Shown in pieces: positions 2,801 to 63,389 of a stretch of DNA of 64,000 nt (within the stretch, counting starts at the first letter, position 1; each line of letters opens with the position of its first letter). Under the pieces are notes generated by a model that saw only the letters and a program-made list of their open reading frames with translations, was not told the DNA's origin and did not search any database. Source of the DNA: Ranitomeya imitator (taxonomy: Eukaryota); assembly GCF_032444005.1 (NCBI RefSeq), contig NC_091284.1:624464001-624528000 (forward strand), given 5' to 3'. The translations under genes and the position numbers were made by a program.

Positions 2801-5800
2801 CAATAATAATAATAAAAATATAACATATTGTTATAAAATTGTACACAGTATATCATTGTATACAGAAGTGCAAAAACACACAACACCTACAATAAACAGG
2901 ACAGGACAGATAAAGGGGCCTTCTGTTCCACCGGACAGCTTCTACATGGACAAATTACTTGATCCCACTGATAACCATGAAGAAAAAAATAATCAATGTG
3001 TCTGAAACTAATGAGAGCAAACAAATAGGCCAGCGACTCTGACTTCACCTTGTTAATGGATACCCAGAGGCAGCAATGTGATTGCCAGAACTTATCTTTG
3101 TGAAGGCCTATAAGACTATATACTTGCACAGACTAGATTAAAACAGTTACTAAAAATCATGTAACTATGATATCCCTGCCAATACCATCTGCATTATTTG
3201 TACTTCTTGCCTAACTTTCAGCCCTCTCAAAGTTAAACATTACTTACAGTTAAATGCAGTGCAGGGCCATTTACATTGTAATGAGTTGATCGTGCTATGC
3301 AAATTGAGTATAAATAAATGGTAAGCCAAATGAATGTTTGTGGTGCGTCTATCATTTATTTTATGATGTTAGGTAGGATCTGCTTTTTTGCTCTCTTTAG
3401 CTGTTCAGCAACAGTGACATTTTGGTCAATTAGCTTTGTCAGGCCCATTGGTGAATATTTCTGATACTCCAATGCCTGTATATTGATATATTTTGGGAAA
3501 TATATTTATTCATATAGTAGTTTCTGAGAAGCAGGCTACATTATCCAGGCTTTTATTGTTTTAACCTTTGAGGTTGTGCATCTTCACTTTTTTTTCTCAT
3601 GATACCAAATGAATGATGATAAATTAGAGTCCATTGCCCCGATTCACAAAGACAGGCCTTTTTCCCTCTGGTTTTGATGATGAGGAGGGTTGGATTCGGG
3701 GCACCCATTTCATTAATAGGCGCACATCTCTTAGTTAATTAGGTGAGGCATGAATTAACATGAGCCTCTGTGTGCGCCTTGCCACAAAACTGACTTATGT
3801 CAGGGACTAGCACAAGATTTGCGTTGCTAGAAATGCTGCTGCTCATCATGAATTTGTCATGTGTCGGTCGTCATGTCCTATCATGCTCCAACTCTACCCA
3901 CTCTCTCCGAGCTGTGTGATTTTGGCATGAAAATGCAAAATGTCACAAACACAGCCGGGTGTTGCTCAAAAATTTTGAAATTATGAAGCTTCACCTGCCA
4001 TTTTGCTTATGTTTGAAAAAGGCCGCTTGCTGGCCGAAATGTTGCTTTTATGATGCATTTTGGATGAATAAAAGAAATGTAATCATATTTCTGATGTCGT
4101 GTAAACATTTTGTCTCTGAATTTGCTGGTAACTTAGTGGGAAGTTTCCCCAAGGAATCACGGAACCTGTGGAGTGGTGCAAAGTGAACTACCATTACGGA
4201 CAATGTAATTTTCTAGCAGCAGCACAGTCAACCACAAACATCCATCTCATTTAGTCCTCAGTATTTTAGGCTGAGCAATTGGTAAGAGGCAAGGTTTCAA
4301 TTACCAAAAAAAACATTCTAACATGCCATTTTATGTATTTATTCAAATAGCAAGGTGGATCCCAAAAGAGTATATCTGGAATTTAGGCTGAACTGATCGC
4401 TCTTTTGTCCCTATAGTAATACAATTTGATAATTGTGATGGGAATCACAAATACAGTTGTGCTCATGAAGCTTTGAGGCCCCTATGCACATTAGATAGCT
4501 ATTGGCTGAACTATTGTTCACCTGACATATCTCTCTGACTGCTCATTCATAAGAACACTGTGCTGAGTGTTTGTGGGTACCTTATGGAATTCACTACCAG
4601 AATCCTCTGGTAACAGCTTATCTCCATGACAAATAAAAGTATTGGCTGCTAAAATTCGTCAGGTCAGATTATTCTCTCACCCAACATCATCTGTTGAAGA
4701 GAATACGAAGACTACCATACTCAATATAGTGACGGCTTTTCCTGCCGATATTGTTGTGCTCGGTGGCCTATTAAATAATGTATATGTGTAAATTTTGAGA
4801 GAATTTCTTAATGAAACTAAAGCCTCATATTGGCATGACATGTAGTTCTGCTAAGTTTTCTTACAAATAATAGGGAATTCTTTGTGTTGCTGGTGAACAC
4901 TTTTGCAAATGTGACAAGAAAAAGCAGAGCAATATTAATGAATAAAAGAAACTGCTGACATCTGTAATACAATATTCAGCTATTTTTGTAACATACAATT
5001 TGATATTTTTTCACCATTTTTTACAGTTTAGATTGAACATCACCCTTTTTGATTCGCTTGTTTATAGTCGGGGTATTGCAATTTAGCGCCATGTTTAACT
5101 CTTTGTGTACAGTTTTCACTACACAACAGAAAAATCATATTCTCCAATGGCACCAGGGATAATATTGTCCAATTGTACAAGACAGATCAAGTTAAGATTT
5201 CATGAGAAAGCACTGTGCTAATTTACAGAGGATCTGTCAGAGCTACTAGCACTGACATGTCTGTTTTAGTTAATACTTACATTTCCCAGTTGCATTCTGT
5301 TTTATAGAATTAATTTGCCATTGACAATCTGCTGTAACCAATTCTTTTGTCATTATAATGCTTGTATATATACGAGACTCATTTACTGCTGATAGTTTCA
5401 GGCTATGTAGGTACTAGGAGCATAGCTACAATAAATGCAGGGTTTGCAATTGCACCCGGGCCCTAGAGCCTAGGGGACCCCAAAAGTCAAATTGGCCTAT
5501 ATAAAACAAGCAAAGGCATTAAAGAATTGCAAAAATTGGGGGCCAAGTTGTATCTTTTGCATTTGAGTTCATGAGCTTCAAGTTAAGCCACTGCTAGGTA
5601 CATATTCTATTGACAAAGAAAATAGAAATTACCAGTAGTCAACTTATTCATACATTTCCAATAGTAACAATAGAAGAATGAGGATATGAACAGTTTCAAC
5701 AAAAATTTCTCTAAAGTTGTTTTTTTATAGGGAGCATTTTTATGTAGAAAAAGAAACATTTCCAGAGAGCTCCAGGTTCTCTTCTACTGGTCCCATGTGC

Positions 5801-6885
5801 AGAACCATAGATGTACTAGGTGAGGATGATGAAGGCACAGAAGTATGCTACAGCTGACACAACAATTATCAGTGACACTGACATCACTTTATGTGACTGT
5901 GGCATTAAAGTAGTGAGAAATAAAGTTAGGGCTTCCTGTATGCTGCTATCAGCATTGCTGCCCAGCCATGGCAAAGGAAGTGCCTAATAGGTGATCTGTC
6001 CATGTTACCCCAACAAACATAAGACAATGCAATGTCGGATCATTGCAGCTCATTATTTGAACAAATCCCATAATATAACTTAAAAAAAATAATAAAAAGC
6101 TAAACAATTCAAAATCCCTTTTTTCTTCTGACATAGCTTTTTATTGGAGAAAATAGAATGGTATTAGAATAATACATCAAGGAAACAACAATTCCTAGTA
6201 ATCAATTTTTTGTTACTTTTCCAAGAGGACTAATAAAGGGGTGCACCATGGCAGGTTGTATCAAAAGTGGAGATCACTATTTACTAAAATGGACAAATCA
6301 GGAGTGGCGAAATGTCATCTTTAAACTGAATCTCACTGAAAATACTGTAAATGCTGCCTGAACCAAGGGCAGCATGAATCAGACTCTGTATGTGTTATTG
6401 AAACCATGTGTGTTTTACTTTGAAACACTGTGGCAGTCTGGATAAAACGTGCTATAAAAAGCAAGCTGGGGATTATGTTTCTTGGATGTCTAGATTTATA
6501 GGTATCTCCAATGTGTGTATAGGGAGAGACCTATCAGCGATAGGGAGGGAGGTGGTAAGAAGCTGCCAAGGATCGGAATACGACTAGTCATCAGTGACAC
6601 ACAGACCTGGATTCACCAAAGTGTTTATACCAGAAATTGAGTGTGAAACATTTCAAAAAGTTGTAAAATGTTTGCACAACACAAAACTACACAAAAATGT
6701 CACTTTTGGCATTTTCACACCAGTTTTAGACAGCTCAAGGTAGAACGAGTACAGAACGTTCGCAGATGGAGCATGGTGACATCTTTCATGATGAGTTGTG
6801 GTGAACTTTACGCTAAAAAACTTACTTTGTTCACTCCAGTAATTTTTCTATGAAGCATGAAGAATATTAAAATGAATGTTTTTAA

Positions 6886-7213
6886 AGGGAACCTGTCACC
6901 TGAATTTGGCTGGACCAGTTTTTGGTCATATGGGCGGAGTTTTCGGGTGTTTGATTCACCCTTTCCTTACCCGCTGGCTGCATGCTGGCCGCAATATTGG
7001 ATTGAAGTTCATTCTATGTCCTCCGTAGTACATGCCTGCGCAAGGCAATCTTGCCTTGCACAGGTGTGTACTACGGAGGACACAGCATGAACTTCAATCC
7101 AATATTGCGGCCAGCATGCATCCAGCGGGTAAGGAAAGGGTGAATCAAACACCCAAAAACTCTGCCCATATGACCAAAAACTGGTCCCGTCAAATTCAGG
7201 TGACAGGTTCCCT
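6886..7213. mobile_element. Kolobok/T2-family MITE, 328-bp near-perfect palindrome
   Basis: TTAA on both sides (6882-6885, 7214-7217). Termini are AGGGAACCTGTCA...TGACAGGTTCCCT, and the arms are complementary almost to the centre (~7050). Confidence 0.85.
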
Positions 7214-8888
7214 TTAAAAGTAGCTATTTGTATACTGACAGTGTAAGCCATGTATCTTTATATGTTTAATCATTAATACTTTAGCAATACTGGAATAGCA
7301 CGTAGAAACAATTATGCCCTTATTATCTAAAATATTTTCATGTTTAACTAAATTCCAACTCACAAGTTAACAGTTGTGTTCATTCCAAATCATGCAGTCA
7401 TAATTGCCAATTAGAATTTAATTTTAAGAAGAGGATACATTAATCAAATATGCACAAAATTTAAGTTTGGCTTTAACATTATGATCAGCTCATTAATTAT
7501 GGGGGGGGGATGAGAAAAAATTTCAGAGTCAGCCAAAAAAAAGTGCGTTTCGTTAGTCTGCTCAGCGTCATTTCAGAATTCAGTTATCAAGGTGATGTGG
7601 GTGATGCTTTGTGGCTTCATTGAATCTGCAGTCATTAAAGTTATTGCAGGACAGACGGGTACAGTTAGAATTTTTCATTTTGCTTGAGCAAGGAAAATGT
7701 CTGGAGAAATGATGCATTTCAGGTACTCTGAAACCTGTCAGCGTTTGAGAGGTTATTAACTTCAGCTGCTTTTCTGCCTTTTAGACTCAGATGCAGATTT
7801 GTCACACATTTCCCAGAGGTTCCTGTGTGCAATTAGCCATTGGATTTACTGAATAATTACTTAATTTATCATAGAAAATGTTCTTACATTTTGTGTATTT
7901 GAAATGCTACAAAAAAGACAGATCAGCAGAAGCATTAAAATAGAATTTACTGAATATACCTGAATCCTTCCCAAAAAATGATAAACCTCCTATGCAGCCA
8001 TCAGCGCTCATTTGCAGAAGCACAGCATGTAGACATAGATGGCTGAAACTAAATGTCACTTACTGACCTTGATATTGTATTTAACTATATACTACTTTAT
8101 ATCTTAAACCGATCTAGTCAATATTCATATGAGTATGATTTATACAGCTTGATGAAACCTATACTGAATTCACTCTACTATACCATGAAGTAATGAAAGG
8201 TCTAGACAAAATTTAAATCCATGCGGTTTTTCTGAATAAATTTGATTTGTAGAAAAGTTATTATTATTTTAAGTTGAACAATTTTTTTTAAATCCTTATA
8301 TCCACTATACTATTGTGCTTTCCGGCTCCTCTTCTACTCAATGCAACCCATCCAGTCCTCACCGCATATTCAGATCCCCGCCACTCATGCTGAAGGGTTC
8401 TGCACAAGGATATAGACAGATATAGTCATGATATGCACCATAACCTTCTATGTGTATGGGCAGGACTCTTCTGGGTCTCATGAATATCTAAAATCCCAAC
8501 TTAGCATGAGAATTAAGCGAACTGCTTAGGTGAAATGGTTACTGGTGTGTAGCAGAATTCAGCTGGGAGATTAGTATAATTTTTTTTAACCATTTAATAG
8601 CCCTTTGTGGTTCAGAAAAATGGTGGCATGAAATCTGCGTGGAAGAGATTTACAAAACGAGTTAGCATCCTGGTTGAATACAGAGTTTTTCAAGTCCACT
8701 TAAATTTTAACACAAATCTCCAATGCCAACATAAAGTTTCATAAACTAAGTGCCCAGAAAATGCCTCCAATAATCATATAACACCCAAATAATGGTGTTG
8801 TTTCATGTCCGCATGCACTTATAGTACACACATACGGTGCCAAAATACTACTACCTCCAGACCAACTCAAGATATAGTGACTATAGAA

Positions 8889-9073
8889 TAGTGTTCCCCA
8901 ACTCCGGTCCTTAAGAGCCACCAACAGGTCATGTTTTGAGGATTTCCTTAGTATTGCACAGGTCATTGAATGCTTGCCTGTCAGGTGATGCAATTATCAC
9001 CTGTGCAATAATAAGGATATCCTGAAAACATGACCTGTTGGTGGCTCTTGAGGACCAGACTTGGGGAATACTG
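8889..9073. mobile_element. hAT (Charlie/Buster-like) MITE, 185 bp
   Basis: 8-bp TSD CTATAGAA (8881-8888, 9074-9081). TIR TAGTGTTCCCCAA / TTGGGGAATACTG; palindromic body. Confidence 0.85.
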
Positions 9074-9294
9074 CTATAGAACTACAACAGCAATAGTCCT
9101 CATACCAAAGCCACACATACTCCCCAGGGGCTTAAATTCTAGTCTATATAGTCATTTAAAATTCTTTGTATTCCCCTATCATGCCCCCAAACAGAAACGT
9201 AAGCAGCATTACCAAGGAATCATTTTTCCATTATATACCACTAGATGGTGGCCCGATTCTAACGCATCGGGTATTCTAGAATATGCATGTCCAC

Positions 9295-10042
9295 TGTTGT
9301 GAATTCTGTGGCTGAGTTCACTTCTGTGGTCACAAGTGGTATTGCAGTCTCTGGGCTTCCTCCCTCAGGTGTTTTGGTGAGCTCGTTGGCTGCCTTGCTA
9401 TTTAGCTCCACCTGAGTCTGTCTTCCTTGCTCCTTGTCAATGTTCCAGTGTTGGATCTGAGCTACTGCATCTTTCCTTGGGCCTGCTGCTCTGCTAGATA
9501 AGTGCTTCTAGTTTGTTTTCTGTTTTTTCTGTCCAGCTTGTTATTATCTTTTGCTGGAAGCTCTGAGAAGCAAAGGGGTGCACCGCCGTGCTGTTAGTTC
9601 GGCACGGTGGGTCTTTTTGCCCCTTTGCGTGGTTTTCGTTTTAGGGTTTTTTGTAGACTGCATAGTTCTCTTTGCTATCCTCGCTCTGTCTAGAATATCG
9701 GGCCTCACTTTGCTGAATCTATTTCGTTCCTACGTTTGTCTTTTCATCTTGCTAACAGTCATTATATGTGGGGGCTGCCTATTCCTTTGGGGTATTTCTC
9801 TGAGGTAAGTCAGGCTTGTATTTCTATCTTCAGGCTAGTCAGCTCCTCAGGCAGTGCCGAGTTGCATAGGTAGTTGATAGGCGCAATCCACTGCTGCTTC
9901 CAGTTGTGTGAGGATAGATCAGGTACTGCAGTCTACAGAGATTCCACGTCTCAGAGCTCGTCCTATTGTTTTGGGTTATTGCCAGATCTCTGTATGTGCG
10001 CTGATTACTGCACGCTGTGTTGCCTGATTGCCAGCCATAACA
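9295..10042 (+). repeat. 5' LTR of family 1 element (748 bp)
   Basis: TGTTGTGAATTC...CCATAACA, repeated at 14235-14982 with one visible substitution (CCTACGTTT vs CCTACATTT). Confidence 0.97.
9399..9437 (+). promoter_or_regulatory. LTR TATA-like box (TATTTA 9399-9404) and predicted transcript 5' end / self-primer GCTCCTTGT (9429-9437)
   Basis: TATTTA lies 30 nt upstream of GCTCCTTGT, which is the reverse complement of ACAAGGAGC at 10045-10053. The TSS is inferred, not mapped. Confidence 0.65.
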
Positions 10043-10044
10043 GT

Positions 10045-10053
10045 ACAAGGAGC
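10045..10053 (+). promoter_or_regulatory. Putative self-priming primer-binding site (non-tRNA PBS)
   Basis: ACAAGGAGC starts 2 nt after the LTR-terminal CA. There is no TGG (tRNA CCA complement). It has 9/9 complementarity to 9429-9437. Confidence 0.65.
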
Positions 10054-10173
10054 CATTCAATGATTTCCAATAGAGGGAAAAAAGAAATCCTGACATCATT
10101 TTTTTTTCTTAGCTCTGTCTTCAGTCTTTTTTTTCCCCTAGACATTAGAGTGCTTCAGGACACAGCTGTGGAC

Positions 10174-13100
10174 ATGGATATTCAGGCTCTGTGCTCCTCA
10201 ATGGATAATCTCGTTGTAAATGTACAAAAGATTCAAGATACTATTGATCAGAAATCGATGCTAGAACCAAGAATTCCGATTCCTGATTTGTTTTTTGGTG
10301 ACAGAACTAAGTTCCTGAGCTTCAGAAATAATTGTAAGCTATTTTTGGCCTTGAAACCTCATTCTTCTGGTAATCCTATTCAACAGGTTTTGATTATTAT
10401 TTCTTTTTTGCGCGGCGACCCACAGGACTGGGCGTTTTCTCTTGCACCAGGAGATTCTGCATTGAGTAATGTTGATGCATTTTTCCAGGCGCTGGGATTG
10501 CTTTACGATGAGCCTAATTCAGTGGATCAAGCTGAGAAAAATCTGCTGGCTTTATGCCAGGGTCAGGATGATGTAGAAGTATATTGTCAGAAATTTAGAA
10601 AATGGTCAGTACTCACTCTGTGGAATGAATCTGCACTAGCGGCTTTGTTCAGAAAGGGTCTCTCTGAAGCTCTTAAGGATGTAATGGTGGGATTTCCTAT
10701 GCCTGCTGGTTTGAATGAGTCTATGTCCTTGGCCATTCAGATCGGTCGTCGCTTGCGCGAGCGTAAATCTGTGCACCATCTGGCGGTATTGTCTGAGAGT
10801 AAGCCTGAGCCTATGCAGTGCGACAGGACTATGACTAAAGTAGAACGGCACGAACACAGACGTCTGAACAGACTGTGTTTCTATTGTGGTGATTCTACTC
10901 ATGCTATTTCTAATTGTCCTAAACGCACTAGGCGGTTCGATAGCTCTGCCGTTATTGGTACTGTACAGTCCAAATTCCTTTTGTCCATTACCTTAATGTG
11001 CTCTTTGTCATCATATTCTGTCATGGCGTTTGTGGATTCAGGCGCTGCCCTGAATCTGATGGATTTGGATTATGCTAAACGTTGTGGATTTTTCTTGGAG
11101 CCTTTGCGGTGTCCTATTCCGTTGAGAGGAATTGATGCTACACCTCTGGCCAAGAATAAGCCTCAGTACTGGGCCCAGCTGACCATGTGCATGGCTCCTG
11201 CACATCAGGAGGTTATTCGCTTTTTGGTGCTGCATGGTTTGCATGATGTGGTCGTGTTGGGGTTGCCATGGCTACAAACCCATAATCCAGTATTGGATTG
11301 GAACTCTATGTCGGTGACCAGCTGGGGTTGTCAGGGAGTACATGGTGATGTTCCATTTTTGTCTATTTCGTCATCCATTCCTTCTGACATCCCAGAGTTC
11401 TTGTCGGACTTTCAGGATGTATTTGAAGAGTCCAAGTCTGATGCCCTTCCTCCGCATAGGAATTGTGATTGTGCTATCGATTTGATTCCTGGTAGTAAAT
11501 TCCCTAAGGGTCGTTTATTTAATTTGTCCGTACCTGAACACACCGCTATGCGCAGTTATGTGAAGGAGTCCCTGGAGAAGGGACATATTCGCCCATCGTC
11601 GTCACCATTGGGAGCAGGGTTCTTTTTTGTAGCCAAGAAGGATGGTTCGCTAAGACCGTGTATTGATTACCGCCTTCTTAATAAGATCACTGTTAAGTTT
11701 CAGTATCCCTTGCCATTGATTTCTGACTTGTTTGCTCGGATTAAGGGGGCTAGTTGGTTTACTAAGATTGATCTTCGTGGTGCGTATAATCTGGTGAGAA
11801 TCAGGCAGGGAGATGAATGGAAAACGGCATTTAATACGCCCGAGGGTCATTTTGAGTATCTGGTGATGCCGTTCGGACTTGCCAATGCTCCATCTGTTTT
11901 TCAGTCTTTTATGCATGACATTTTCCGTGAGTATCTGGATAAATTCTTGATTGTTTACTTGGATGACATTTTGATCTTCTCAGATGATTGGGAGTCTCAT
12001 GTGAAGCAAGTCAGAATGGTTTTCCAGGTACTGCGTGCTAATTCCTTGTTCGTGAAGGGATCAAAGTGTCTCTTCGGTGTGCAGAAAGTTTCATTTTTGG
12101 GGTTCATCTTTTCCCCTTCTACTATCGAGATGGATCCGGTTAAGGTTCAGGCCATCCAGGATTGGACTCAGCTGACATCTCTAAAAAGTTTGCAGAAATT
12201 CCTGGGCTTTGCTAATTTTTATCGTCGCTTCATCTGTAATTTTTCTAGCATTGCCAGACCATTGACCGATTTGACCAAGAAGGGTGCTGATTTGGTTAAT
12301 TGGTCTTCTGCTGCCGTGGAAGCTTTTCAGGAGTTGAAGCGTCGTTTTTGCTGTGCCCCTGTGTTGTGTCAACCTGATGTTTCTCTTCCGTTCCAGGTCG
12401 AGGTTGATGCTTCTGAGATTGGTGCAGGGGCGGTTTTGTCACAGAGAGGTTCTGGTTGCTCAGTGTTCAAACCATGTGCTTTCTTTTCCAGGAAATTTTC
12501 TGCTGCTGAGCGTAATTATGATGTGGGCAACCGAGAGTTGCTGGCCATGAAGTGGGCATTTGAGGAGTGGCGTCATTGGCTTGAGGGTGCTAAGCATCGC
12601 GTGGTGGTTTTGACTGATCATAAGAACCTTACTTATCTTGAGTCTGCCAAGCGCTTGAATCCTAGACAGGCCCGTTGGTCGTTATTTTTTGCTCGTTTTG
12701 ATTTTGTGATTTCATACCTTCCGGGCTCTAAAAATGTGAAGGCGGATGCTCTGTCTAGGAGTTTTGTGCCCGACTCTCCGGGGTTATCTGAGCCGGCGAG
12801 TATCCTCAAGGAAGGAGTCATTGTGTCTGCCATCTCCCCTGATTTGCGGAGAGTGTTGCAGAAATTTCAGGCTAATAAACCTGATCGTTGTCCGGCCGAG
12901 AAACTGTTCGTCCCTGATAGGTGGACTAGTAAAGTTATCTCTGAACTTCATTGTTCGGTGCTGGCCGGTCATCCAGGAATCTTTGGTACCAGGGAGTTGG
13001 TTGCTAGATCCTTCTGGTGGCCATCTCTGTCACGGGATGTGCGTGCTTTTGTGCAGTCCTGTGGAATTTGTGCTAGGGCTAAGCCCTGCTGTTCACGTGC

Positions 13101-14355
13101 CAGTGGGTTGCTTTTGCCCTTGCCGGTCCCGAAGAGGCCTTGGACACATATTTCGATGGATTTCATTTCTGACCTTCCCGTTTCTCAAAAGATGTCTGTC
13201 ATTTGGGTGGTCTGTGATCGCTTTTCTAAAATGGTCCATCTGGTGCCCTTGGTTAAATTGCCTTCCTCCTCTGATTTGGTGCCTTTGTTCTTCCAGCATG
13301 TGGTTCGTTTACATGGCATTCCTGAGAATATTGTTTCTGACAGAGGTTCCCAGTTTGTCTCGAGGTTCTGGCGAGCCTTTTGTGGTAGGATGGGCATTGA
13401 CCTATCTTTTTCCTCGGCCTTCCATCCTCAGACTAATGGCCAGACCGAACGAACCAATCAGACCTTGGAAACATATCTGAGATGTTTTGTTTCCGCTGAC
13501 CAGGATGATTGGGTGTCATTTTTGCCGTTGGCTGAGTTCGCCCTTAATAATCGGGCCAGCTCGGCTACCTTGGTCTCTCCATTTTTCTGCAATTCTGGGT
13601 TCCATCCTCGTTTCTCTTCAGGACAGGTTGAGTCTTCGGACTGTCCTGGTGTGGATTATGTGGTGGACAGGTTGCAGCAGATCTGGACTCAGGTAGTGGA
13701 CAATTTGACCTTGTCCCAGGAGAAGGCTCAGCTTTTCGCTAATCGCAGACGCCGTGTGGGACCCCGACTTCGTGTTGGGGATCTGGTTTGGTTATCTTCT
13801 CGTCATATACCTATGAAGGTTTCCTCTCCTAAATTTAAACCTCGTTTTATTGGTCCGTATAGGATTTCTGAGATTCTCAATCCGGTGTCTTTTCGTCTGA
13901 CCCTCCCAGACTCCTTTTCCATACATAATGTATTCCATAGGTCGTTGTTGAGGAGATACGTGGCACCTATGGTTCCATCTGTGGAGCCTCCTGCCCCTGT
14001 TTTGGTGGAGGGGGAATTGGAGTATATTGTGGAGAAGATTTTGGATTCTCGTGTCTCTAGACGGAAACTCCAGTATCTGGTCAAATGGAAGGGTTATGCT
14101 CAGGAAGATAATTCCTGGGTTTTTGCCTCTGATGTCCATGCCCCAGATCTTGTTCGTGCCTTTCATGTGGCTCATCCTGGTCGGCCTGGGGGTTCTGGTG
14201 AGGGTTCGGTGACCCCTCCTCAAGGGGGGGGTACTGTTGTGAATTCTGTGGCTGAGTTCACTTCTGTGGTCACAAGTGGTATTGCAGTCTCTGGGCTTCC
14301 TCCCTCAGGTGTTTTGGTGAGCTCGTTGGCTGCCTTGCTATTTAGCTCCACCTGA
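10174..14355 (+). CDS. Gag-Pol polyprotein (Gag, CCHC knuckle, aspartic protease, RT, RNase H, integrase, chromodomain)
   Basis: CFYCGDSTHAISNC zinc knuckle; FVDSGA protease; RPCIDYR...YLDD RT; DAS...TDHKNL RNase H; H..GHPG..C..C and SDRGSQF integrase; EYIVEKILDSR...YLVKWKGY chromodomain. ATG 10174 (MDIQAL) is chosen as the likely start. The reading frame is open from 9874 and ends 121 nt inside the 3' LTR. Confidence 0.95.
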   Translation: MDIQALCSSMDNLVVNVQKIQDTIDQKSMLEPRIPIPDLFFGDRTKFLSFRNNCKLFLALKPHSSGNPIQQVLIIISFLRGDPQDWAFSLAPGDSALSNVDAFFQALGLLYDEPNSVDQAEKNLLALCQGQDDVEVYCQKFRKWSVLTLWNESALAALFRKGLSEALKDVMVGFPMPAGLNESMSLAIQIGRRLRERKSVHHLAVLSESKPEPMQCDRTMTKVERHEHRRLNRLCFYCGDSTHAISNCPKRTRRFDSSAVIGTVQSKFLLSITLMCSLSSYSVMAFVDSGAALNLMDLDYAKRCGFFLEPLRCPIPLRGIDATPLAKNKPQYWAQLTMCMAPAHQEVIRFLVLHGLHDVVVLGLPWLQTHNPVLDWNSMSVTSWGCQGVHGDVPFLSISSSIPSDIPEFLSDFQDVFEESKSDALPPHRNCDCAIDLIPGSKFPKGRLFNLSVPEHTAMRSYVKESLEKGHIRPSSSPLGAGFFFVAKKDGSLRPCIDYRLLNKITVKFQYPLPLISDLFARIKGASWFTKIDLRGAYNLVRIRQGDEWKTAFNTPEGHFEYLVMPFGLANAPSVFQSFMHDIFREYLDKFLIVYLDDILIFSDDWESHVKQVRMVFQVLRANSLFVKGSKCLFGVQKVSFLGFIFSPSTIEMDPVKVQAIQDWTQLTSLKSLQKFLGFANFYRRFICNFSSIARPLTDLTKKGADLVNWSSAAVEAFQELKRRFCCAPVLCQPDVSLPFQVEVDASEIGAGAVLSQRGSGCSVFKPCAFFSRKFSAAERNYDVGNRELLAMKWAFEEWRHWLEGAKHRVVVLTDHKNLTYLESAKRLNPRQARWSLFFARFDFVISYLPGSKNVKADALSRSFVPDSPGLSEPASILKEGVIVSAISPDLRRVLQKFQANKPDRCPAEKLFVPDRWTSKVISELHCSVLAGHPGIFGTRELVARSFWWPSLSRDVRAFVQSCGICARAKPCCSRASGLLLPLPVPKRPWTHISMDFISDLPVSQKMSVIWVVCDRFSKMVHLVPLVKLPSSSDLVPLFFQHVVRLHGIPENIVSDRGSQFVSRFWRAFCGRMGIDLSFSSAFHPQTNGQTERTNQTLETYLRCFVSADQDDWVSFLPLAEFALNNRASSATLVSPFFCNSGFHPRFSSGQVESSDCPGVDYVVDRLQQIWTQVVDNLTLSQEKAQLFANRRRRVGPRLRVGDLVWLSSRHIPMKVSSPKFKPRFIGPYRISEILNPVSFRLTLPDSFSIHNVFHRSLLRRYVAPMVPSVEPPAPVLVEGELEYIVEKILDSRVSRRKLQYLVKWKGYAQEDNSWVFASDVHAPDLVRAFHVAHPGRPGGSGEGSVTPPQGGGTVVNSVAEFTSVVTSGIAVSGLPPSGVLVSSLAALLFSST
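14222..14231 (+). promoter_or_regulatory. Polypurine tract of family 1 element
   Basis: AAGGGGGGGG, then TAC, then the 3' LTR TG at 14235. Confidence 0.85.
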
Positions 14356-42080: not shown

Positions 42081-42769
42081 TCTCATTTAGCACTCTTTGC
42101 CCCTCTTGTACTGGTCCTTGTGTTTGAGGATGGACCGGAATCATTACTCATTTCTGCAAAGTTCTATAATAAACAAACTACTGTATATACTCGAGTATAA
42201 GCCGAGATTTTCAGCCCATTTTTTTAGGCTGAAGGTGCCCCTCTCAGCTTATACTCGAGTCAATCCCAGGGGGTCGGCGGGGGAGCAGCGGCTGTCACAT
42301 CATACTCTCCCTCCCAGTGCGGTCCCTGGCAGCCTCACCGATGTGATGGTCTCTGGGCACCGGCAGCTCTCCTGTGTTCAGCGGTCACATGATACCGCTC
42401 ATTAAAGTAATGAATATAGAAGTGACTCCACTCCCATAGGGAGTGACCGCTGAACTCAGGAACAAGCTGCCGGAGCCAGAGACCATCGCATTGGAGAAGC
42501 TGCCAGGGACTGCGCTGGGAGGGTGAGTATGACAAAGAAAGGTGAGCATTGCGATATTTACCTGTCCCCATTCCACCGCTGGGCTCCATCTTCCGCATCC
42601 ACTGGCTGTGATGTTCTGGTCAGAGGGCTTGATGACGTGGCTAGTGCACGCCCTCTGCCTAAACAGTCGCTGCAGAGACCCAGAACACACAGCGGTGCGT
42701 AGCGGTGGAACGGGGACAGGTGAATATCGCAAGTGCCAGTGTCCCTGCCTGCACAGGACAAGTCGCAGC

Positions 42770-43165
42770 ATATGGGGCATAATACTCTATGGAACATCTT
42801 ATGGGGCCATAATCAACCTTTGTGCAGAATGTTATGGGGCACAATTTCTATGGAGCATTTTATGGGGACATAATTAACCTTTATGCAGCATTGTATGGGG
42901 CAAATGTTTCTATGGAGCATCTACTGGGGCCATAATCAACCTTTATGCAGCATTATGTGGGACACATTTCTATGGAGCATATTATGGGGCTATAATCAAC
43001 CTTTATGCAGCATTGCATTGGCAAAATGTTTATATTTAGCATTTTATGGGGCCACAATCAACCTTTGTGCAGCATTATATGGGGCATATTTTTGTATGGA
43101 GCATCTTATGGGGCCCATCATAAACTTTATGGAGCATTATATGGGGTATATTTTGTATGGAGCAT
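42770..43165. repeat. Minisatellite (~30/60-bp ATGGAGCAT.TTATGGGG / AATCAACCTTTATGCAGCAT units) inside the Tc2-like element
   Basis: Tandem units are visible directly. Confidence 0.85.
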
Positions 43166-43305
43166 TAAAAAGAGCTACTGATTCAATATGGATTTTCAAA
43201 AACACTTATCCTACTGATGTCTCAATTAATTTTACTTTTATTGGTTTCTATTTTTATTTTTGAAATTTACCAGTAGCTGCTACATTTCCCACCCTAGGCT
43301 TATAC

Positions 43306-51364: not shown

Positions 51365-53042
51365 CTAAACTGACTCTATGGGCATTCAGTCTTTTCCTGA
51401 GTCATCTCCTGCTTCTAAATCTCAGAGAGTATGCTAGAAATTAAAATATGCTATGTGCACATACCCTTAGAGAGCATTGACATGCCCCCTGTATACTAAA
51501 AAAATTTGCATGTGACTTCAAAACTTAATTGCTATGGTCTGGAACAATGGCTGACTGCAAAGCAGGTATTGTTTTTAATTGTTATCTTAGGAGCCAAGCA
51601 GTAAAATACATCTGAACATCTAGAATAAAGCAGTTTTCAAAGGGAAAAACACATATCTATTTCTTTTGTAATAGTGTTAACTCTTTTGTTATAATCAAAG
51701 AGCTGGGAAAATTTTTGGATGGAGTAAATCATGTGAGGGTAGATGTCAGAGGTAGTGCGTTCAGGTTACTTCTACAGAGGTACCCGCAGATCTTTCCTCT
51801 CTCCCCAAGCACTATTGATCCTATGCGGACGTGTTCTCCAAAAGGGCTGCGGAGACACTTCCTCCTCACTGCCCCTATGACTGTCCTATTGATCTGTTGC
51901 CTGGTGCTGAGCCTCCCCAGGGTCGAGTCTATCCGTTATCTCTCCCGGATATGGAGGCAATGTCCCAGTACATTCAAGAGAATCTGGCAAGAGGATTCAT
52001 TAGGAAGTCAGTGTCACCTGCAGGGGCTGGCTTCTTCTTCGTGCAGAAGAAAAATGGAGAACTACGTCCATGCATAGACTACAGGGGTCTTAACGCCATC
52101 ACCGTTAAGAATAAATACCCACTACCTCTGATATCTGAGCTTTTCGATAGGCTATGGGGAGCAAGGGTATTTACTAAATTAGATCTGAGGGGTGCTTACA
52201 ACCTGATTCGCATCCGTGAGGGGGACGAATGGAAGACGGCTTTTAACACCAGGGATGTTCACTATGAATATCTGGTGATGCCCTTCCGGCTCTGTAATGC
52301 CCCAGCCATTGTTCAAGACTTTGTGAACGACATCTTCCGGGAGATGCTCACCACCTCGTTCGTAGTCTATGTGGATGATATTCTCATCTACTCTCCAGAT
52401 ATTGACACCTCATTGGAGAGATGTTGGCAAAATTTTTGGCCTCTTACGGGCAAACTCCCTCTATGCCAAGTTGGAGAAGTGTGTGTTTGAGCAGGAGTCC
52501 TTGCCTTTCCTTGGCTATATCATCTCTGCCCAGGGATTGGCTATGGATCCTGCCAAACTACAGGCTGTGATGGACTGGCAAGAACCCCATTCTCTTAAAG
52601 CGGTGCAGTGCTTTATGGGGTTAATTCATTACTATCACCAGTTCATTCCACACTTCTCAACTTTGGTAGCTCCCTTGGTTGCCCTCATCAGGAAGGGAGC
52701 CAGTCCCAAGTTGTGGTCGGAGGAGGTCTCCAAGGCCTTTCTCTTGATCAAGTCACACTTCGCTAGCACTCCCATCCTACATTGCCCCGATGTAGATAAG
52801 CCATTTATTATGGAGGTGGATGCCTCATCCGTTGGTGCTGTAGCAGTCCTCTTCCAAAAGGATGCTCAAGGTTAGAAGTTTCCTTGTTTCTCCTCCAAGA
52901 CCTTTTCACCAGCGGAGAGGAATTATTCAATCAGGAAAAGGGAGTTGCTAGCCATGAAGTTGGCTTTCTCAGAGTGGAGACACCACTTGAAGGGAGCTCG
53001 CATTCCCTTCCAAGTGTTCACAGACCACAAGAACTTGGTGTA

Positions 53043-54549
53043 CAGTCATGGCCAAAAGTTTTGAGTGTTTGTCTGATGTTTATATCACATGCAGAAATAT
53101 AATTGCAATCATATTATGAGTACCAATAGGTTATATTGACAGTTAGAATGAGTTAATGCAGCAAGTCAATATTTGCAGTGTTGACCCTTCTTCTTCAAGA
53201 CCTCTGCAATTCTCCCTGGCATGCTCTCAATCAACTTCTGGACCAAATCCTGACTGATAGCAGTCCATTCTTGCATAATCAATGCTTGCATTTTGCCAGA
53301 ATTTGTTGGTTTTTGTTTGTCCACCCGTCTCTTGATGATTGACCACAAGTTCTCAATGGGATTAAGATCTGGGGAGTTTCCAGGCCATGGACCCAAAATC
53401 TCTATGTTTTGTTCCATGAGCCATTTAGTTATCACCTTTGCTTTATGGCAAGGTGCTCCATCATGCTGGAAAAGGCATTGTTGGGCGCCAAACTGCTCTT
53501 GGACGGTTGGGAGAAGTTGCTCTTGGAGGACATTCTGGTACCATTCTTTATTCATGGCTGTGTTTCTAGGCAAGACTGTGAGTGAGCTGATTCCCTTGGC
53601 TGAGAAGCAACCCCACACATGAATGGTTTCAGGATGCTTTACAGTTGGCATGAGACAAGACTGGTGGTATTGCTCCCCTCTTCTCCGAATAAGCTGTTTT
53701 CCAGATGTCCCAAACAATCGAAAAGGGGATTCATCAGAGAAAATGACTTTGCCCCAGTCCTCAGCAGTCCACTCCCTGTACCTTTTGCAGAATATCAGTA
53801 GGTCCCTGATGTTTTTTCTGGAGAGAAGTGGCTTCTTTGCTGCCCTCCTTGAAACCAGGCCTTGCTCAAAGAGTCTCCGCCTCACAGTGTGTGCAGAAGC
53901 ACTCACACCAGCCTGCTGCCATTCCTGAGCAAGCTCAGCACTGCTGGTTGCCCGATCCCACAGTTGAAACAGTTTTAAGATACGGTCCTGGCGCTTGCTG
54001 GTCTTTCTTGGGCGCCCTGGAGCATTTTTGACAACAATGGAAGCTCTCTCTTTGAAGTTCTTGATGATGCGATAGATTGTTGACTGAGGTGCAATCTTTG
54101 TAGCTGCGATACTCTTCCCTGTTAGGCCATTTTTGTGCAGTGTAATGATGGCTGCACGTGTTTCTTTAGCGATAACCATGGTTAACTGAAGAGAAACAAT
54201 GATACCAAGCACCAGCCTCCTTTTAAAGTGTCCAGTGATGTCATTCTTACTTAATCATGACTGATCGCCAGCCCTGTCCTCATCAACACCCACACCTGTG
54301 TTAATGGATCAATCACTAAAACGATGTTAGCTGCTCCTTTTAAGGCAGGACTGCAATGATGTTGAAATGTGTTTTGGGGGTTAAAGTTCATTTTCTGGGC
54401 AAATATTGACTTTGCAAGTACAGTAATTGCTGTTAAGCTGATCACTCTGACATTCAGGAGTATATGCAAATTGCCATTAGAAAAAATGAAGCAGTAGACT
54501 TTGGAAAAATTAATATTTGTCTTATTCTCAAAATTTTTGTCCATGACTG
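53043..54549 (-). mobile_element. Tc1/mariner DD35E (Traveler-like) transposon, full length, 1507 bp
   Basis: TA TSD (53041-53042, 54550-54551) restores host pol KNLVY|LQMAQRLNS. 23-bp TIR CAGTCATGGCCAAAAGTTTTGAG with 2 mismatches between ends. Confidence 0.93.
53166..54179 (-). CDS. DD35E transposase, 337 aa, uninterrupted ORF
   Basis: ATG at 54179. Paired-like HTH region, GRPRK, VIFSDES (D1), FQHDGAPCH (D2), [12 protein letters not shown] (E), with exactly 35 residues between D2 and E. Confidence 0.92.
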   Translation of the reverse strand: MVIAKETRAAIITLHKNGLTGKSIAATKIAPQSTIYRIIKNFKERASIVVKNAPGRPRKTSKRQDRILKLFQLWDRATSSAELAQEWQQAGVSASAHTVRRRLFEQGLVSRRAAKKPLLSRKNIRDLLIFCKRYREWTAEDWGKVIFSDESPFRLFGTSGKQLIRRRGEQYHQSCLMPTVKHPETIHVWGCFSAKGISSLTVLPRNTAMNKEWYQNVLQEQLLPTVQEQFGAQQCLFQHDGAPCHKAKVITKWLMEQNIEILGPWPGNSPDLNPIENLWSIIKRRVDKQKPTNSGKMQALIMQEWTAISQDLVQKLIESMPGRIAEVLKKKGQHCKY

Positions 54550-55996
54550 TACTTACAGATGGCCCAGCGGCTGAATTCTCGCCAGACTAGATGGTCCCTG
54601 TTCTTCTCCCGGTTCCATTTTACTCTCCATTTTCTCTCCGGGGAGAAGAACATTCATGCCAACACTCTCTCTCTCGCTGTGTAGTGTCATCTGAGGAGGA
54701 GGAAGAGCCTTGGCTTATTGTCCCTTCTGAGAGCCTGAGAACTGTAGCTCCGGTTTCGCTAGAGTCTGTTCCCCCAGGCAAGACTTTTGTTCCATCTAAT
54801 TTATGACTGGAGGTTCTCTCTTGGGCTCACTCATCCAGGGTGGGTGGATATTTTGGGACCAAGAGGACATCTGAGCTTTTGGCGAGGACGTACTGGTGGC
54901 CGCATATGGCCTGTGACGTCAGGAACTCTATTCGGGCGTGTGTTCTGTGCCAAGAATCGGTCTCCTCGGCATCGGCCTGCTGGGCAACTTTACCCCCTGC
55001 CGGTGGCAGACAGGCCCTGGGAGATGGTTGGGATGGACGTTGTGGTGGGCTTACCTAAGTCTCGTAACTGCACCGTTATCTGGGTTGTCACCGATCATTT
55101 CTCTAAGATGGTGCACTTGGTGCCGCTTCCACGGTTACCTTCTGCATGGGCCTTGGCGGCGTTGTTCATTAAACATTTACCGTTTTCATGGCATACCTGA
55201 TAAAATAGCCAGTGACCGGGGTCCCTGGTTTGCGTCTCGGTTTTGGAGAGATCTCTGTCGTTTACTCAGCATAGAACTAAATCTCTCCTCTGCATATCAT
55301 CCCAAGACGAATGGGTTGGTAGAGAGAGCAAACCACACTCTGGTGACACATTTGCAACATTTTGTCTCTGCTAGGCAGGATGATTGGGCATCTTTGCTAC
55401 CTTGGGCAGAATTTGCTCTTAACAATGCCGTAGCCGATTCCACTGGGCAGACTCCTTTTCTCATTATTTACGGCCAGCATCTGTGTGTCCCTGTGCCCAT
55501 GCCTGTCATCCACTGATTCCAGGGTGGCAGACTGGGCAGTGGAGGCACGTGATATCTGGGACCACACACAGGATGCCATCCGGGCCTCCAAGGAGAGAAT
55601 GAGGGTTTCGGCTGATACACACCGGCGCCCCGCTCCAACCTTTGCTCCTGGCGACTTAGTGTGGCTCTCCGCCCGTAACATCAGGCTGCGAGTTGAGTCC
55701 ACTAAGTTTGCGCCTCACTACATTGGCCCATTCAAGGTTCTGGAACAGGTCAACCCTGTGGTCTACCGTTTGGCTATTCCTCTGCCGGGACATCGGGTTC
55801 GTCCACGGATGAGTACGAGGTGAATGCTATCGTGGGGTGCAAGGTAGTACGTGGCAAAATATACTATCTGGTGGACTGGAAGGGCCACGGCCCTGAGGAC
55901 AGAACCTGGGAACCTGTAGAGCACATTCTGGCTCCGCTGCTCATTGCAGCCTTTGATCATAGCAAGGCCCGGGGGGGCCCTAGGAGGGGGGGGTAA

Positions 55997-56914: not shown

Positions 56915-57700
56915 TCCCCCATCCTGGCCCTCTTGTTTCTCATTCCTGGCTCTATCCATATGTTCTCCCATCCTGCCCTCATGAGTATCCATTCTTCCCA
57001 TGTGATGTCCCATCCTGCCCCATATGATCTCCTCATCCTGCCCCATCTGTCTCCATTCTGACCCATCTGTCCCATCCTCCCCCGTCTGTCTCCATAATGC
57101 CCCATGATCCTGCCCCATTTGTCCCATGATCCTACCCATCTGTCCCATGATCCTGCCTCATCTGTCCCATGATCCTGCCCCATCTGTCTCTATCGTATCC
57201 ATCCTGCCCATGATCCTGCACCATGTGTCTCCATCCTGCCCCATCTGTCTTCATCCTGCCCCATGGTGCTGCACCATGTGTCTCAATCCTGCCCCATCTG
57301 TCTCCATCCTGCCCCATGATCCTGCACCATGTGTCTGCATCCTGCACCATATCTCCATCCTGCCCCATGATCTTGCACCATGTGTCTCCATCCTGCTCCA
57401 TCTGTGTCTCCATCCTGCCCCATGATCCTGCACCATGTGTCTCCATCGTGCCCCATCTGTCTTCATCCTGCCCCATGGTGCTGTACCATGTGTCTCCATC
57501 CTGCCCCATCTGTCTCCATCCTGCCCCATGATCCTGCACCGTGTGTCTGCATCCTGCACCATTTCTCCATCCTGCCCCATGATCTTGCACCATGTGTCTT
57601 CATCCTGCCCCATCTGTGTCTCCATCCTGCCCCATGATCCTGCACCATGTGTCTCCATCCTGCCCCATGATCCTGCAGCATGTCTCTCCATCCTGCACAA
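56915..57700. repeat. Minisatellite of CCATCCTGCCCCAT / GATCCTGCACCATGTGTCT units with a 212-bp higher-order repeat
   Basis: Tandem units; the same block order recurs at 57209, 57421 and 57633. Confidence 0.9.
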
Positions 57701-60238
57701 TGTCACATAGTAATAGAGTTTATCTGAACCTGAGTCTCGGACGCAGGTTGAGTTACTACACCAACAGAATCCTGTCGCTGGGGCCCGGTGAGCAGAAGAG
57801 AGGGGGCCCGATGCAGGCCAACTCTGTTCAGTGGGCCCCATATGCCAGTCAGGGGAGTAATGCCTTGATGGTGGCCCTGGTGATAATTCTCTCATGCAAG
57901 AGAATTGGTTCAATCATGCTACTGACACTTGGCTCAAACTCTCATCTGAGTGTCATCTTAGTGTGATCTGATTCTCTTGGATGAAAGAATTCGAGCACAT
58001 TGAGAAAACAGATAACTTAATTTCTCCATCTTCTCCATTGTCTGAGGCTGTGGATGTCGGACTGCACTTAGATGACAGCTGAATGCAGTCCGATGATTCA
58101 CATGCAGCCATAGACTGGAGTGGGTGCGTGTGAGCTGAATTTCGGAGTCACTCAAGTCACAGCATACTGCAGATTATTTTATTTTGTTACGGACCAAATT
58201 GGTCTGTGGAAAAAAATCACAGATCTGTGCTGCTCCTTAGTACAACATTGGACCGAGTGCTGTCCAATAAAACATCACTTAGCCCTCAGCCATGTTATAC
58301 GCCAGTGTGAATGAGGTAAGACCCTTTATTCTTCCTGCAGATCTTCTCCAATTAGCCTCTCATGCTGGAGTCCAGCCTCAATTACTTTTTTTTTGCAATA
58401 CTGTTAATTTTTCGCATACTTCTACATATAATGTACTTGTGATATGTGTACTATACATATATAGTGTGTTTCTGTTACATGACATTTCTGGAAGGTGAAT
58501 CTATTTGCCAGCTCTAAATCCTGATGCACAGTGCCCTGCTGACACCCTGCCTCCCTCCAGAGAAGGATGAGGCTGCTGTGCCCTTCTGCCCCCTGACATG
58601 ACATAGAGGCTCAATTCTGAAGACTGAAGTTTTTCAGAGCAGTGTGTAGAGTAAATGACACCTGTGGGAGTCTTGAGAGGGGGCTGAAGTGTTCTGTCAG
58701 GGGGCAGATTGGACTCAGCAGCCTTATGCTTCTCTGCAGGAGGTGAGGGTGAGGGGTCACTGGCACACACCGTGCTGTGCTCTTATCAGGACCTATAGCT
58801 GACACATAGACAGTAGTGAGGACATAGCAGCATCCTTGGTGAGCCGGCTGCTGTGCTGATAGTATGGCTAATGCAGTGACTGAGCACACAAGCCGACTCA
58901 CTGACCATGTTTCTGCTGCAGTGTGGACTGGAGCTTGTCAGGACACCATGCAGCAGCACAGGCTCAGGTGCTCACCCGGCGGGGACTGCTCTGCCCCTGC
59001 TGTTCTGTGATGAGTGACTGGGGATAATACTGCAGGAGCCCGTGCTCAGCAGGGATTGAATGGCGGAAAGTCCCACCCTCCTGTGACTTGGCATTGGCTG
59101 CCTCTCCCAGCTGTCTGTCACATTGATGCTCCTCCTACTGCTCCCTCCACACACCACTCCTGTTTATGAAAACCCTGACATCAGGTCCCTCCAGCTCATG
59201 GGCCCCATGTACCAGTAATGGTAATAATGCCCTGATGGCAGCCCTGGCTGTTCTCAATAGCACTTTGTTATGCTATTGGCATCCTGATTCTTGCCATGTA
59301 TATGAACCTTTTGGGCCCTATTATAAAAGTAAAAAAAGTTTTGACTATCAAATGTAGTTACATAAAAATAAAAGCATAAAATATGGAAGGAATAAAGATT
59401 CGTACGGAAGGCTTAAAAGGCATTCTATTCAGTGTATAAGTATACAGTATAATTTTCTTGTTATTATCAAGTATATTATCATGAACTTGTATTGGACATC
59501 ATTCCAGATAAATGTATAATTCTAATCTCATTAAGTTAATTTTTATTGTAGTAAAATATGTCTCAAATATTGTTTTAATATTTGAGATACACAGTAGATG
59601 TGTAGTAAGGCTACATTATCTCTGTTGTCGCCGAGCCTCTTTTACTTTGCTATTTTCTTCTTTACTCAGTTCTATTGGTAAGGTCATAAAACACCCTTGA
59701 ATGTTAGCAGAAGTGTTTCACATGGTTTATATTGATTTATTTTGAATCTACCAACATTAATCGAATTTCAGGATTTGGCATTGTTTTTTTTTTTCTTTTA
59801 TTTGTTAGGTCAAAGAATAGTTTCCTTCATCCTCCTCCAAGTGTCCATGAGCTGTCTAACAATGTCAATAGCTAAATCAAGTTTGACAGTAAATCAATAG
59901 GAAATTTGAGAAGATTTTATGGGTCTTATTTAATACTGTGTTTCTTTAGATAATAATCAAGTATGATAGGCTTAGGCATGCATCAGAACATTGATACTAG
60001 TATTTGGAAGTTTGGGGGTTTTCAGTGAATCTGTTAATTTATATGTTATACATACTAACTCATTGTAACATATTCCAGGGGACATCTCACAGAATAACTA
60101 AGCAATATGAATATATGATTGTATTTAACTATGATTTTTATGTTCACGTTTACTTCAAATATATATTTGTTAGTTTGTGTAAAAGTTAATTATGTCCTCG
60201 CTGCCAGTAAGCCATCTGGCCCTTCTCTTTGAGACTAA

Positions 60239-60966
60239 AGGTACCGTCACACTTAGCGACGCTGCAGCGATACCGACAACGATCCAGATCGCTGCAGCGT
60301 CGCTGTTTGGTCGCTGGAGAGCTGTCACACAGACAGCTCTCCAGCGACCAACGATCCCGAGGTCCCCGGTAACCAGGGTAAACATCGGGTAACTAAGCGC
60401 AGGGCCGCGCTTAGTAACCCGATGTTTACCCTGGTTACCAGCGTAAAAAAACAAACAGTGCATACTTACATTCAGCTGTCTGTCCCTTGCCGTCTGGTTC
60501 CTGCACTGACTGCTGGCCGTAAAGTGAAAGTGAAAGCACAGCACAGCGGTGAATCACACAGCGGTGACTCACCGCTGTGGCTGTGCTCTGCTTTCACTTT
60601 CCGGCCAGCAGTCAGTGCAGGAACCAGATGGCAAGGGACAGACAGCTGAATGTAAGTATGTACTGTTTGTTTTTTTACGCTGGTAACCAGGGTAAACATC
60701 GGGTTACTAAGCGCGGCCCTGCGCTTAGTTACCCGATGTTTACCCTGGTTACCAGTGAAGACATCGCTGAATCGGTGTCACACACGCCGATTCAGCGATG
60801 TCTACGGGGAGTCCAGCCACGAAATAAAGTTCTGGACTTTCTTCCCCGACCAGCGATCTCCCAGCAGGGGCCTGATCGCTGCTGCCTGTCACACTGGACG
60901 ATATCGCTAGCGAGGACGCTGCAACGTCACGGATCGCTAGCGATATCGTCTAGTGTGACAGTACCT
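60239..60966. mobile_element. PIF/Harbinger-type MITE, copy 2 (728 bp)
   Basis: TSD TAA/TAA. TIR AGGTACCGTCACAC. Same arms as 26631. Confidence 0.88.
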
Positions 60967-62605: not shown

Positions 62606-62662
62606 ACCCAAGTCTATCATAACCAATGATATGCAGGTGCAGCCTTGCACTCTGGAGTCTAA

Positions 62663-63389
62663 AGGCCCCTTCACATTGAGCGACGCTGCAGCGATACCGA
62701 CAACGATCCGGATCGCTGCAGCGTCGCTGTTTGGTCGCTGGAGAGCTGTCACACAGACCGCTCTCCAGCGACCAACGATGCCGGTAACCAGGGTAAACAT
62801 CGGGTAACTAAGCGCAGGGCCGCGCTTAGTAACCCGATGTTTACCCTGGTTACCATGCTAAAAGTAAAAAAAAAACAAACACTAGATACTTACCTACCGC
62901 TGTCTGTCCTCCAGCGCTGCGCTCTGCTTCTCTGCACTCCTCCTGTACTGTCTGGGAGCCGGAAAGCAGAGCGGTGACGTCACCGCTCTGCTTTCCGGCT
63001 CACAGCCAGTACAGGAGGAGAGCAGAGCACAGCGCTGGAGGACAGACAGCGGTAGGTAAGTATGTAGTGTTTGTTTTTTTTTACTTTTAGCATGGTAACC
63101 AGGGTAAACATCGGGTTACTAAGCGCGGCCCTGCGCTTAGTTACCCGATGTTTACCCTGGTTACCAGTGAAGACATCGCTGGATCGGTGTCACACACGCC
63201 GATCCAGCGATGTCTTCAGGGAGTCCAGCGACGAAATAAAGTTCTGGACTTTATTCAGCGACCAACGATCTCCCAGCAGGGGCCTGATCGTTGGTCGCTG
63301 TCACACATAACGATTTCATTAACGATATCGTTGCTACGTCACAAATAGCAACGATATCGTTAACAATATCGTTATGTGTGAAGGTACCT
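62663..63389. mobile_element. PIF/Harbinger-type MITE, copy 3 (727 bp)
   Basis: TSD TAA/TAA. Termini AGGCCCCTTCACA / TGTGAAGGTACCT. Same arms as 26631 and 60239. Confidence 0.88.

Follow-up and report, generated by a model that had tools for sequence, protein, structure and literature searches.

Traveler (TR) elements, the DD35E family described by Zong et al. (2020, PMC7093834), are about 1.5 kb long, are flanked by a TA duplication and encode a transposase (about 338 aa) that carries two HTH motifs as well as a GRPR motif and an NLS. Their terminal repeats span 13-68 bp and end in CAGTC or CAGCC, CAGTC being the hallmark; elements with repeats down to 13 bp were scored as intact, and intact anuran copies measure 1,563-1,565 bp (PMC7093834). 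The known hosts are patchily distributed over ray-finned fish, four anurans (Nanorana, Rana, Rhinella and Xenopus) and two squamates, and fish-frog identities above 83% have been read as horizontal transfer (PMC7093834). The same study retrieved family members by a TBlastN E-value of at most 1e-100 against the Salmo salar TR transposase together with the DD35E signature, used a Kimura divergence below 5% as the yardstick for young elements, and reported that the family is possibly still active in some frogs (PMC7093834). Traveler is the closest sister of DD34E/Tc1; the ends of Sleeping Beauty (SB) read CAGTT (PMC7093834).

One poison-frog genome has been described as abounding in Gypsy-type LTR elements; its Tc1/mariner elements are likewise numerous, with high copy numbers, and most closely resemble sequences of freshwater fish (Rogers et al. 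2018, PMC6278860). This likeness was read as horizontal transfer followed by proliferation, and the elements were named by RepBase, e.g. Tc1-3_SSa and Mariner-4_DR (PMC6278860).

Here we analyse one Traveler copy of the poison frog Ranitomeya imitator, found within a stretch of 64,000 nt that we refer to as the window. Our best explanation, to which we assign a probability of about 0.88, is that a single Traveler copy entered a TA of an older LTR-retrotransposon pol gene, has been decaying since then without selection, and is most likely non-autonomous.

The element and its insertion site

The element occupies positions 53043-54549 (1,507 bp) and carries its transposase gene on the minus strand. 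As read from the window sequence, its termini are inverted (CAGTC...GACTG) with a TA on either side. A repeat finder returned arms of 26 nt at 53040-53065 and 54527-54552 with 92% complementarity, which consist of the TA and a 23-nt terminal repeat with two mismatches (53043-53065 and 54527-54549). A blastn search with the element found no other Traveler copy within the 64,000-nt window. The parts of the locus are listed below in window order; L001 is a related copy on a metagenome contig, and X1, X2 and X9 are sequencing runs, which were available as assembled contigs only.

51831-53040, plus strand: left flank, a decayed LTR-retrotransposon pol covering reverse transcriptase and RNase H, its frame interrupted by a stop at 52873-52875
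53041-53042, no strand: left TA target-site duplication (sequence; 1,509-base skip in paralogous pol contigs)
53043-53065, minus strand: 3' terminal inverted repeat, outer 23 bp only, ending in CAGTC (repeat finder; L001 comparison)
53063-53066, minus strand: junction of a 54-bp deletion that took out some 3' UTR along with the inner half of the 3' repeat (L001 alignment; X1 and X2 contigs)
53066-53168, minus strand: leftover 3' UTR and TGA stop codon at 53166-53168 (sequence, ORF list, L001 alignment)
53169-54179, minus strand: transposase ORF of 337 aa with HTH domains, GRPR-type motif and DDE domain
53678-53680, minus strand: private in-frame loss of 3 bp here removes one Arg of an RRRR run (X1, X2 and X9 contigs, L001, spacing table)
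54180-54501, minus strand: 5' UTR, 4 bp of which are missing at 54261 in this copy alone (run contigs and L001 alignment)
54502-54549, minus strand: 5' terminal repeat arm of about 48 bp, collinear with L001, with mismatches at 54540 and 54534 in its outer 23 bp (54527-54549)
54550-54551, no strand: right TA target-site duplication (read from sequence)
54550-55516, plus strand: right flank, pol resuming in frame from the TA and then running into stops and frameshifts (translation, ORF list)

The left flank matches the Pfam families RVT_1 (8e-24 in 51831-52487), RT_RNaseH_2 (1.5e-11) and RT_RNaseH (8e-14, both in 52369-53040), while the pieces of the right flank that were tried gave no Pfam match. 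The two pol flanks were translated separately and never joined: the frame ends with FTDHKNLV just before the left TA and restarts with YLQMAQRLNSRQ from the right TA. Since the pol frame is thus continuous across the site, the element made a clean insertion into a single TA within the sequence that codes for RNase H, and this event is shown by the TA duplication together with the frame continuity. Beyond the stop at 52873-52875 pol is broken into short ORFs downstream, and the 40-64 kb part of the window yielded no long terminal repeats.

Contigs from the runs that join 53038 to 54548 skip 1,509 bases, i.e. the element plus one TA. We considered these joints as a possible empty allele and rejected this interpretation: contigs of the LTR family are very abundant in public runs and differ by about 8% from this pol copy, so that paralogous uninterrupted pol copies explain the joints, and in assembled contigs the two are indistinguishable. 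In run X9, summed contig depth over the flanks (52043-53040 and 54550-55549) was about 4,000-14,000, as against about 400-1,400 over Traveler. The sequence-only reading of this DNA had proposed a clean TA duplication inside an older LTR pol. Both parts hold, the first from the TA at 53041-53042 and 54550-54551 and from the paralogous contigs that skip the element with one TA, the second from the RT/RNase H flanks and from the roughly 8% divergence of this LTR copy compared with about 1.3% for the element.

On the minus strand the transposase frame opens with an ATG at 54179, has its last sense codon at 53169 and encodes 337 aa with zero stops, as that reading had claimed. Pfam assigns HTH_Tnp_Tc3_2 (2e-15) and DDE_3 (4.8e-14), with weaker N-terminal matches to HTH_23 and HTH_SB, and the GRPR-type motif appears as PGRPRK at residues 54-59. 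The catalytic triad is formed by D149 (53733-53735), D240 (53460-53462) and E276 (53352-53354). In an alignment with 49 full-length relatives, 35 residues separate D240 from E276; the same D, D, E and the same spacing are found in 35 of the 49, down to about 44% identity. The best match among solved structures is the catalytic domain of Sleeping Beauty SB100X (PDB 5cr4, E 4.3e-42, 227 residues aligned), a DD34E enzyme relative to which our protein has one residue more between the second catalytic D and the E, so the D-D-35-E count made from the sequence alone was correct. The distance from D149 to D240 is 90 residues here and 91 in most relatives, one Arg codon being gone. The residue missing at position 167 is also absent from the Salmo salar protein P0008, so this loss may be tolerated. 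Some relatives are annotated in a longer form of 349 aa that starts with MLGII or MLEII 11 codons upstream (54210-54212). In this copy GTG stands at that upstream position, which leaves the 337-aa form as the only one to begin with ATG.

Several other repeats lie in the window. Positions 57193-57703 hold a C-rich minisatellite with 13- and 20-nt spacing, CATCCTGCCCCATG-like units and a higher-order repeat of about 106/212 nt, and 42765-43166 hold a tandem array of six copies of a unit of about 61-62 nt, whose identity to the reference unit ranges over 60-76%. A pair of blocks, each about 700 bp long (60231-60937 and 62655-63349), are 88-89% identical and stand in direct orientation 2.4 kb apart; within each, an almost perfect hairpin palindrome of about 75 nt (CCGGTAACCAGGGTAAACATCGGGTAAC...) occurs twice. 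These blocks could represent two long terminal repeats that bound a small element, or else a tandem duplication with MITE-like hairpins.

Losses and substitutions in this copy

Scanning of metagenome contigs with the element revealed seven loci from unassigned hosts, including those we call L001 and L002; a scan of viral contigs revealed no relative. The L001 copy (VFQM010029410.1) is 1,568 bp long and flanked by TA; its 338-aa frame is open, and its ends form inverted repeats over about 45-48 bp. It is 94.8% identical to the window copy in the 5' UTR, 96.0% in the coding region and 94.4% in the 3' UTR. Compared with L001, the window copy is missing 54 bp between 53064 and 53065, comprising the inner half of the 3' repeat and neighbouring UTR, together with 3 bp near 53678-53680 and a further 4 bp at 54261; a few minor indels also distinguish the two.

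The same losses appear in comparison with the family majority sequence, which was drawn from the contigs assembled for three DNA runs (of organisms coded A, B and F) and may not represent the window's species. One contig per run spans 53064-54557 with 20 substitutions, and all three contigs carry TCT inserted behind 53678 and TGAT behind 54261; the TCT was found in X1, X2 and X9. The X1 and X2 contigs cease to match at 53064, and the lengths of their unmatched parts fit an insert of 54 letters. The X1 contig (1,627 letters in total) divides into 27 letters of foreign flank, 23 terminal letters, 54 extra letters absent from the window copy, 1,501 aligned letters and 22 letters of a second foreign flank; the summed piece lengths indicate an element of 1,568 bp.

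The element had been taken for full-length, and this view has to be given up, as 54, 3 and 4 bp are absent relative to the 1,568-bp L001 and to the X1 majority contig. The description of its terminal repeats as 23 bp long survives in part: the 23 nt with two mismatches are there, though not as a naturally short repeat. By these alignments, the short repeat is the product of the 54-bp deletion, a remnant of a repeat of about 45-48 bp. There is a general lesson in this locus, that an open frame and matching short ends do not make an element full-length; comparison with sister copies alone exposed the deletion.

The 5' arm (54502-54549) is collinear with the 5' arm of L001 and differs from it at two positions of the terminal 23 bp, 54540 and 54534, whereas the window's own 3' arm is identical to the L001 5' arm across those 23 bp. 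At both sites the 5' arm stands alone against the 3' arm and the two arms of L001, which share one state; polarisation against outgroups covered 54540 alone. The two repeat mismatches noticed earlier thus both belong to the 5' arm.

Divergence from the family majority amounts to about 1.3% (20 substitutions in 1,494 aligned bases). Thirteen of the 20 substitutions were itemised, all of them in the ORF. Eight changes alter amino acids (K52N, R74W, T77A, R97H, R127L, R170Q, G198S and K205R) and three are silent (codons 72, 81 and 168), a ratio close to that of unselected decay. R74W, R97H, R170Q and G198S are CpG-to-TpG or CpG-to-CpA changes, a kind of decay typical of ageing in a methylated vertebrate genome, and at these four sites the Ranitomeya protein P0013 retains the family state. 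At residue 77 the majority contigs agree with a Ranitomeya imitator protein. Among 28 DD35E relatives whose triads are intact, none deviates at R127 or G198, and 24 have R97; R74W and R97H fall in the DNA-binding region. Odd residues had been suspected in the sequences QLWDR, AHTVRRR and RRRGEQY, and this suspicion is borne out: they correspond to R74W, to R97H and to the lost Arg codon with R170Q, respectively, all private and several of them products of CpG decay. Identity to L001 is nearly equal in the UTRs (94-95%) and in the coding region (96%), and in a tree of 36 proteins the query's end branch is 0.061, compared with 0.003-0.02 for its clade neighbours.

Activity, fate and age

By analogy with the family, a transposase dimer would bind the terminal inverted repeats through two paired-like HTH domains, and the DDE triad would cut the element out and join it to a new TA. 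The copy described here inserted at a TA within the RNase H coding region of an LTR retrotransposon that was older and already repeated. What it has lost since then is one Arg codon, 4 bp from the 5' UTR and the 54 bp that include the inner half of its 3' repeat; it also shows the two 5'-arm mismatches and some 20 substitutions relative to the majority. That the reading frame is still open is most simply due to chance.

The opposite reading, that this is a live autonomous Traveler with a working transposase, both ends recognised and the ability to cut and paste itself, draws on the uninterrupted 337-aa frame with its full D-D-35-E triad, GRPR-type motif and both HTH regions, so that residual transposase activity may persist. 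It can also appeal to the TA duplications and matching CAGTC ends, to the low divergence from the majority (about 1.3%) and to the report that the family is possibly active in some frogs (PMC7093834). Moreover, since Traveler repeats of 13 bp were counted as intact (PMC7093834), a 23-bp end might still be recognised. The open frame with its motifs and the short repeats accepted as intact also weigh against our best explanation, as do the residue missing from P0008 as well and the origin of the majority sequence in contigs of coded organisms. Yet an autonomous copy is expected to combine an open ORF and triad, which are present, with two complete and matching repeats, which are not: the inner half of the 3' repeat went with the 54-bp deletion and the 5' arm has two terminal mismatches. 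Neither are the invariant residues of the family retained, with R127L and G198S at sites conserved in 28 of 28 relatives and R97H at a site conserved in 24 of 28, the latter accompanied by R74W in the DNA-binding region. The ratio of changing to silent codons near the neutral expectation and the long end branch in the tree point the same way. We therefore consider a live autonomous element improbable. The earlier suggestion that the copy is possibly functional is not supported, given a 3' repeat cut short, a 5' arm with two mismatches and the change of two invariant residues.

Decay of a non-autonomous copy remains the better account. The truncation of the 3' repeat, the 5' mismatches and the changes at invariant residues make autonomy unlikely, and judging from the sequence this copy is probably not autonomous. 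As the outer 23 bp of both ends survive, it may be mobilised in trans by the transposase of intact sister copies.

A frame that is open despite three deletions elsewhere in the element could also mean that selection keeps it so, the transposase having been domesticated as a host gene. Such a role appears very improbable: both ends and the TA duplication persist, the location is a dead LTR pol without host-gene context, the private changes affect conserved residues and look neutral, and an open frame of 1 kb is expected by chance at a divergence of about 1.3%.

The element had been called young, and in relative terms this is right: at about 1.3% from the majority, as against about 8% for the surrounding LTR element, the copy appears fairly young and much younger than its host LTR copy. 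The 1.3% also falls below the 5% Kimura yardstick for young elements (PMC7093834). With an assumed vertebrate neutral rate of the order of 1e-9 per site per year, the divergence suggests an age of around ten million years, a figure that is several-fold uncertain and inflated by CpG decay.

In the metatranscriptomic RNA run X17 (organism J), contigs in the interval 53035-54560 cover Traveler only, at high depth, and none lies on the flanks. These contigs carry variants of their own, e.g. at 53583, 53898 and 54318. A related Traveler lineage is abundant in the X17 library, as RNA or as carried-over DNA, which has no bearing on the expression of this locus.

Comparison with known systems

A word search with the transposase protein returned 2,517 relatives. 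The closest named ones are as follows:

Ranitomeya imitator protein: 94% identity over 291 aa
Xiphophorus maculatus protein: 88-89% identity, full length
Serrasalmus rhombeus protein: about 90% identity, partial
Carp and salmonid proteins, including Salmo salar P0008: 82-83% identity

P0008, a DD35E protein of 337 aa, matches at 82% identity with E 1.3e-188 and 644 bits, which lies within the retrieval threshold of the Traveler study, although P0008 may differ from the query used there. The structure is that of a Traveler as well, with the 35-residue spacing, TA, CAGTC at both ends, a single ORF of 337 aa and a length of 1,507 bp. In a maximum-likelihood tree confined to 36 proteins taken from the word search, the query falls in a clade with 100/99 support together with two platyfish proteins, two Logan-assembly proteins and L001. 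This clade sits inside a larger one (95/96) with salmonid, Umbra, Hucho and bichir-relative proteins; the sole row with 34-residue spacing (P0120) forms a long branch at the far edge of the tree. From sequence comparison, assignment to the published Traveler (DD35E) family, as originally proposed, is supported by the spacing, the CAGTC ends, the TA, the ORF size, the 82% identity to the Salmo salar DD35E protein and the tree position, and the scores leave little doubt about it.

That this might instead be an ordinary DD34E Tc1 element with one privately gained residue, lying outside the DD35E family, has a negligible probability despite the sister relationship of the two groups and the Sleeping Beauty structure being the top match, since the 35-residue spacing that replaces the 34 of DD34E is common to 35 of 49 full-length relatives down to about 44% identity and hence not private, the score is 644 bits to the Salmo salar DD35E protein against 148 to the SB100X catalytic domain, and the ends read CAGTC as in Traveler, not CAGTT.

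The nearest named relatives outside the frog are from platyfish and piranha, at 89-90% protein identity. The metagenome locus L002 (contig ODBT01001456.1, host likewise unassigned) encodes a protein 95% identical to salmonid proteins, while its DNA is 75-88% identical to the window copy, UTRs included; it is a suggestive hint of horizontal transfer. The same contig holds at L002:5-718 a distant second Tc1-like transposase remnant, on the strand opposite to the L002 Traveler and about 33% identical to Traveler proteins. One may go further and propose that the lineage came to poison frogs by horizontal transfer involving teleosts and still transposes by means of intact 1,568-bp sisters, this copy being a recent deletion derivative that could be moved in trans. 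We offer this wider scenario tentatively and regard it as rather unlikely. If it were true, the lineage would count as a vertebrate Tc1-type element active in nature, in hosts from a group that the Traveler list does not include. Interest in it as a natural transposon of vertebrates would then attach to the intact sister copies.

The single copy matters little on its own: it is an ordinary, slightly damaged member of a known family, a genomic fossil in the making, and adds one more host lineage, a dendrobatid, to it. The patchy fish, frog and squamate range of Traveler with its horizontal transfer, and the presence of fish-like Tc1/mariner elements in poison frogs, were already known.

With Sleeping Beauty and other DD34E Tc1 elements this transposon shares the fold, the domain order and cut-and-paste transposition at TA. 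It differs in having 35 residues rather than 34 between the second D and the E and CAGTC rather than CAGTT at its ends, and the overall similarity of its transposase to Sleeping Beauty is far below that to Traveler proteins. Sleeping Beauty also carries long IR/DR repeats. The poison-frog survey of PMC6278860 offers a parallel of another kind, a Gypsy-rich genome with fish-like Tc1/mariner elements; these bear RepBase names, and the DD35E lineage may be among them. The likeness to Traveler extends to the DD35E triad, the TA, the CAGTC ends, a length of about 1.5 kb and a single ORF, which at about 338 aa includes two HTH motifs and one of GRPR type. This copy departs from the family in being 61 bp shorter through its private deletions (54 + 4 + 3 bp), in the truncation of one repeat arm and in its host, a dendrobatid poison frog that is not among the four anurans of PMC7093834. 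Its full-length relatives of 1,568 bp fit the 1,563-1,565 bp of intact anuran Traveler elements (PMC7093834).
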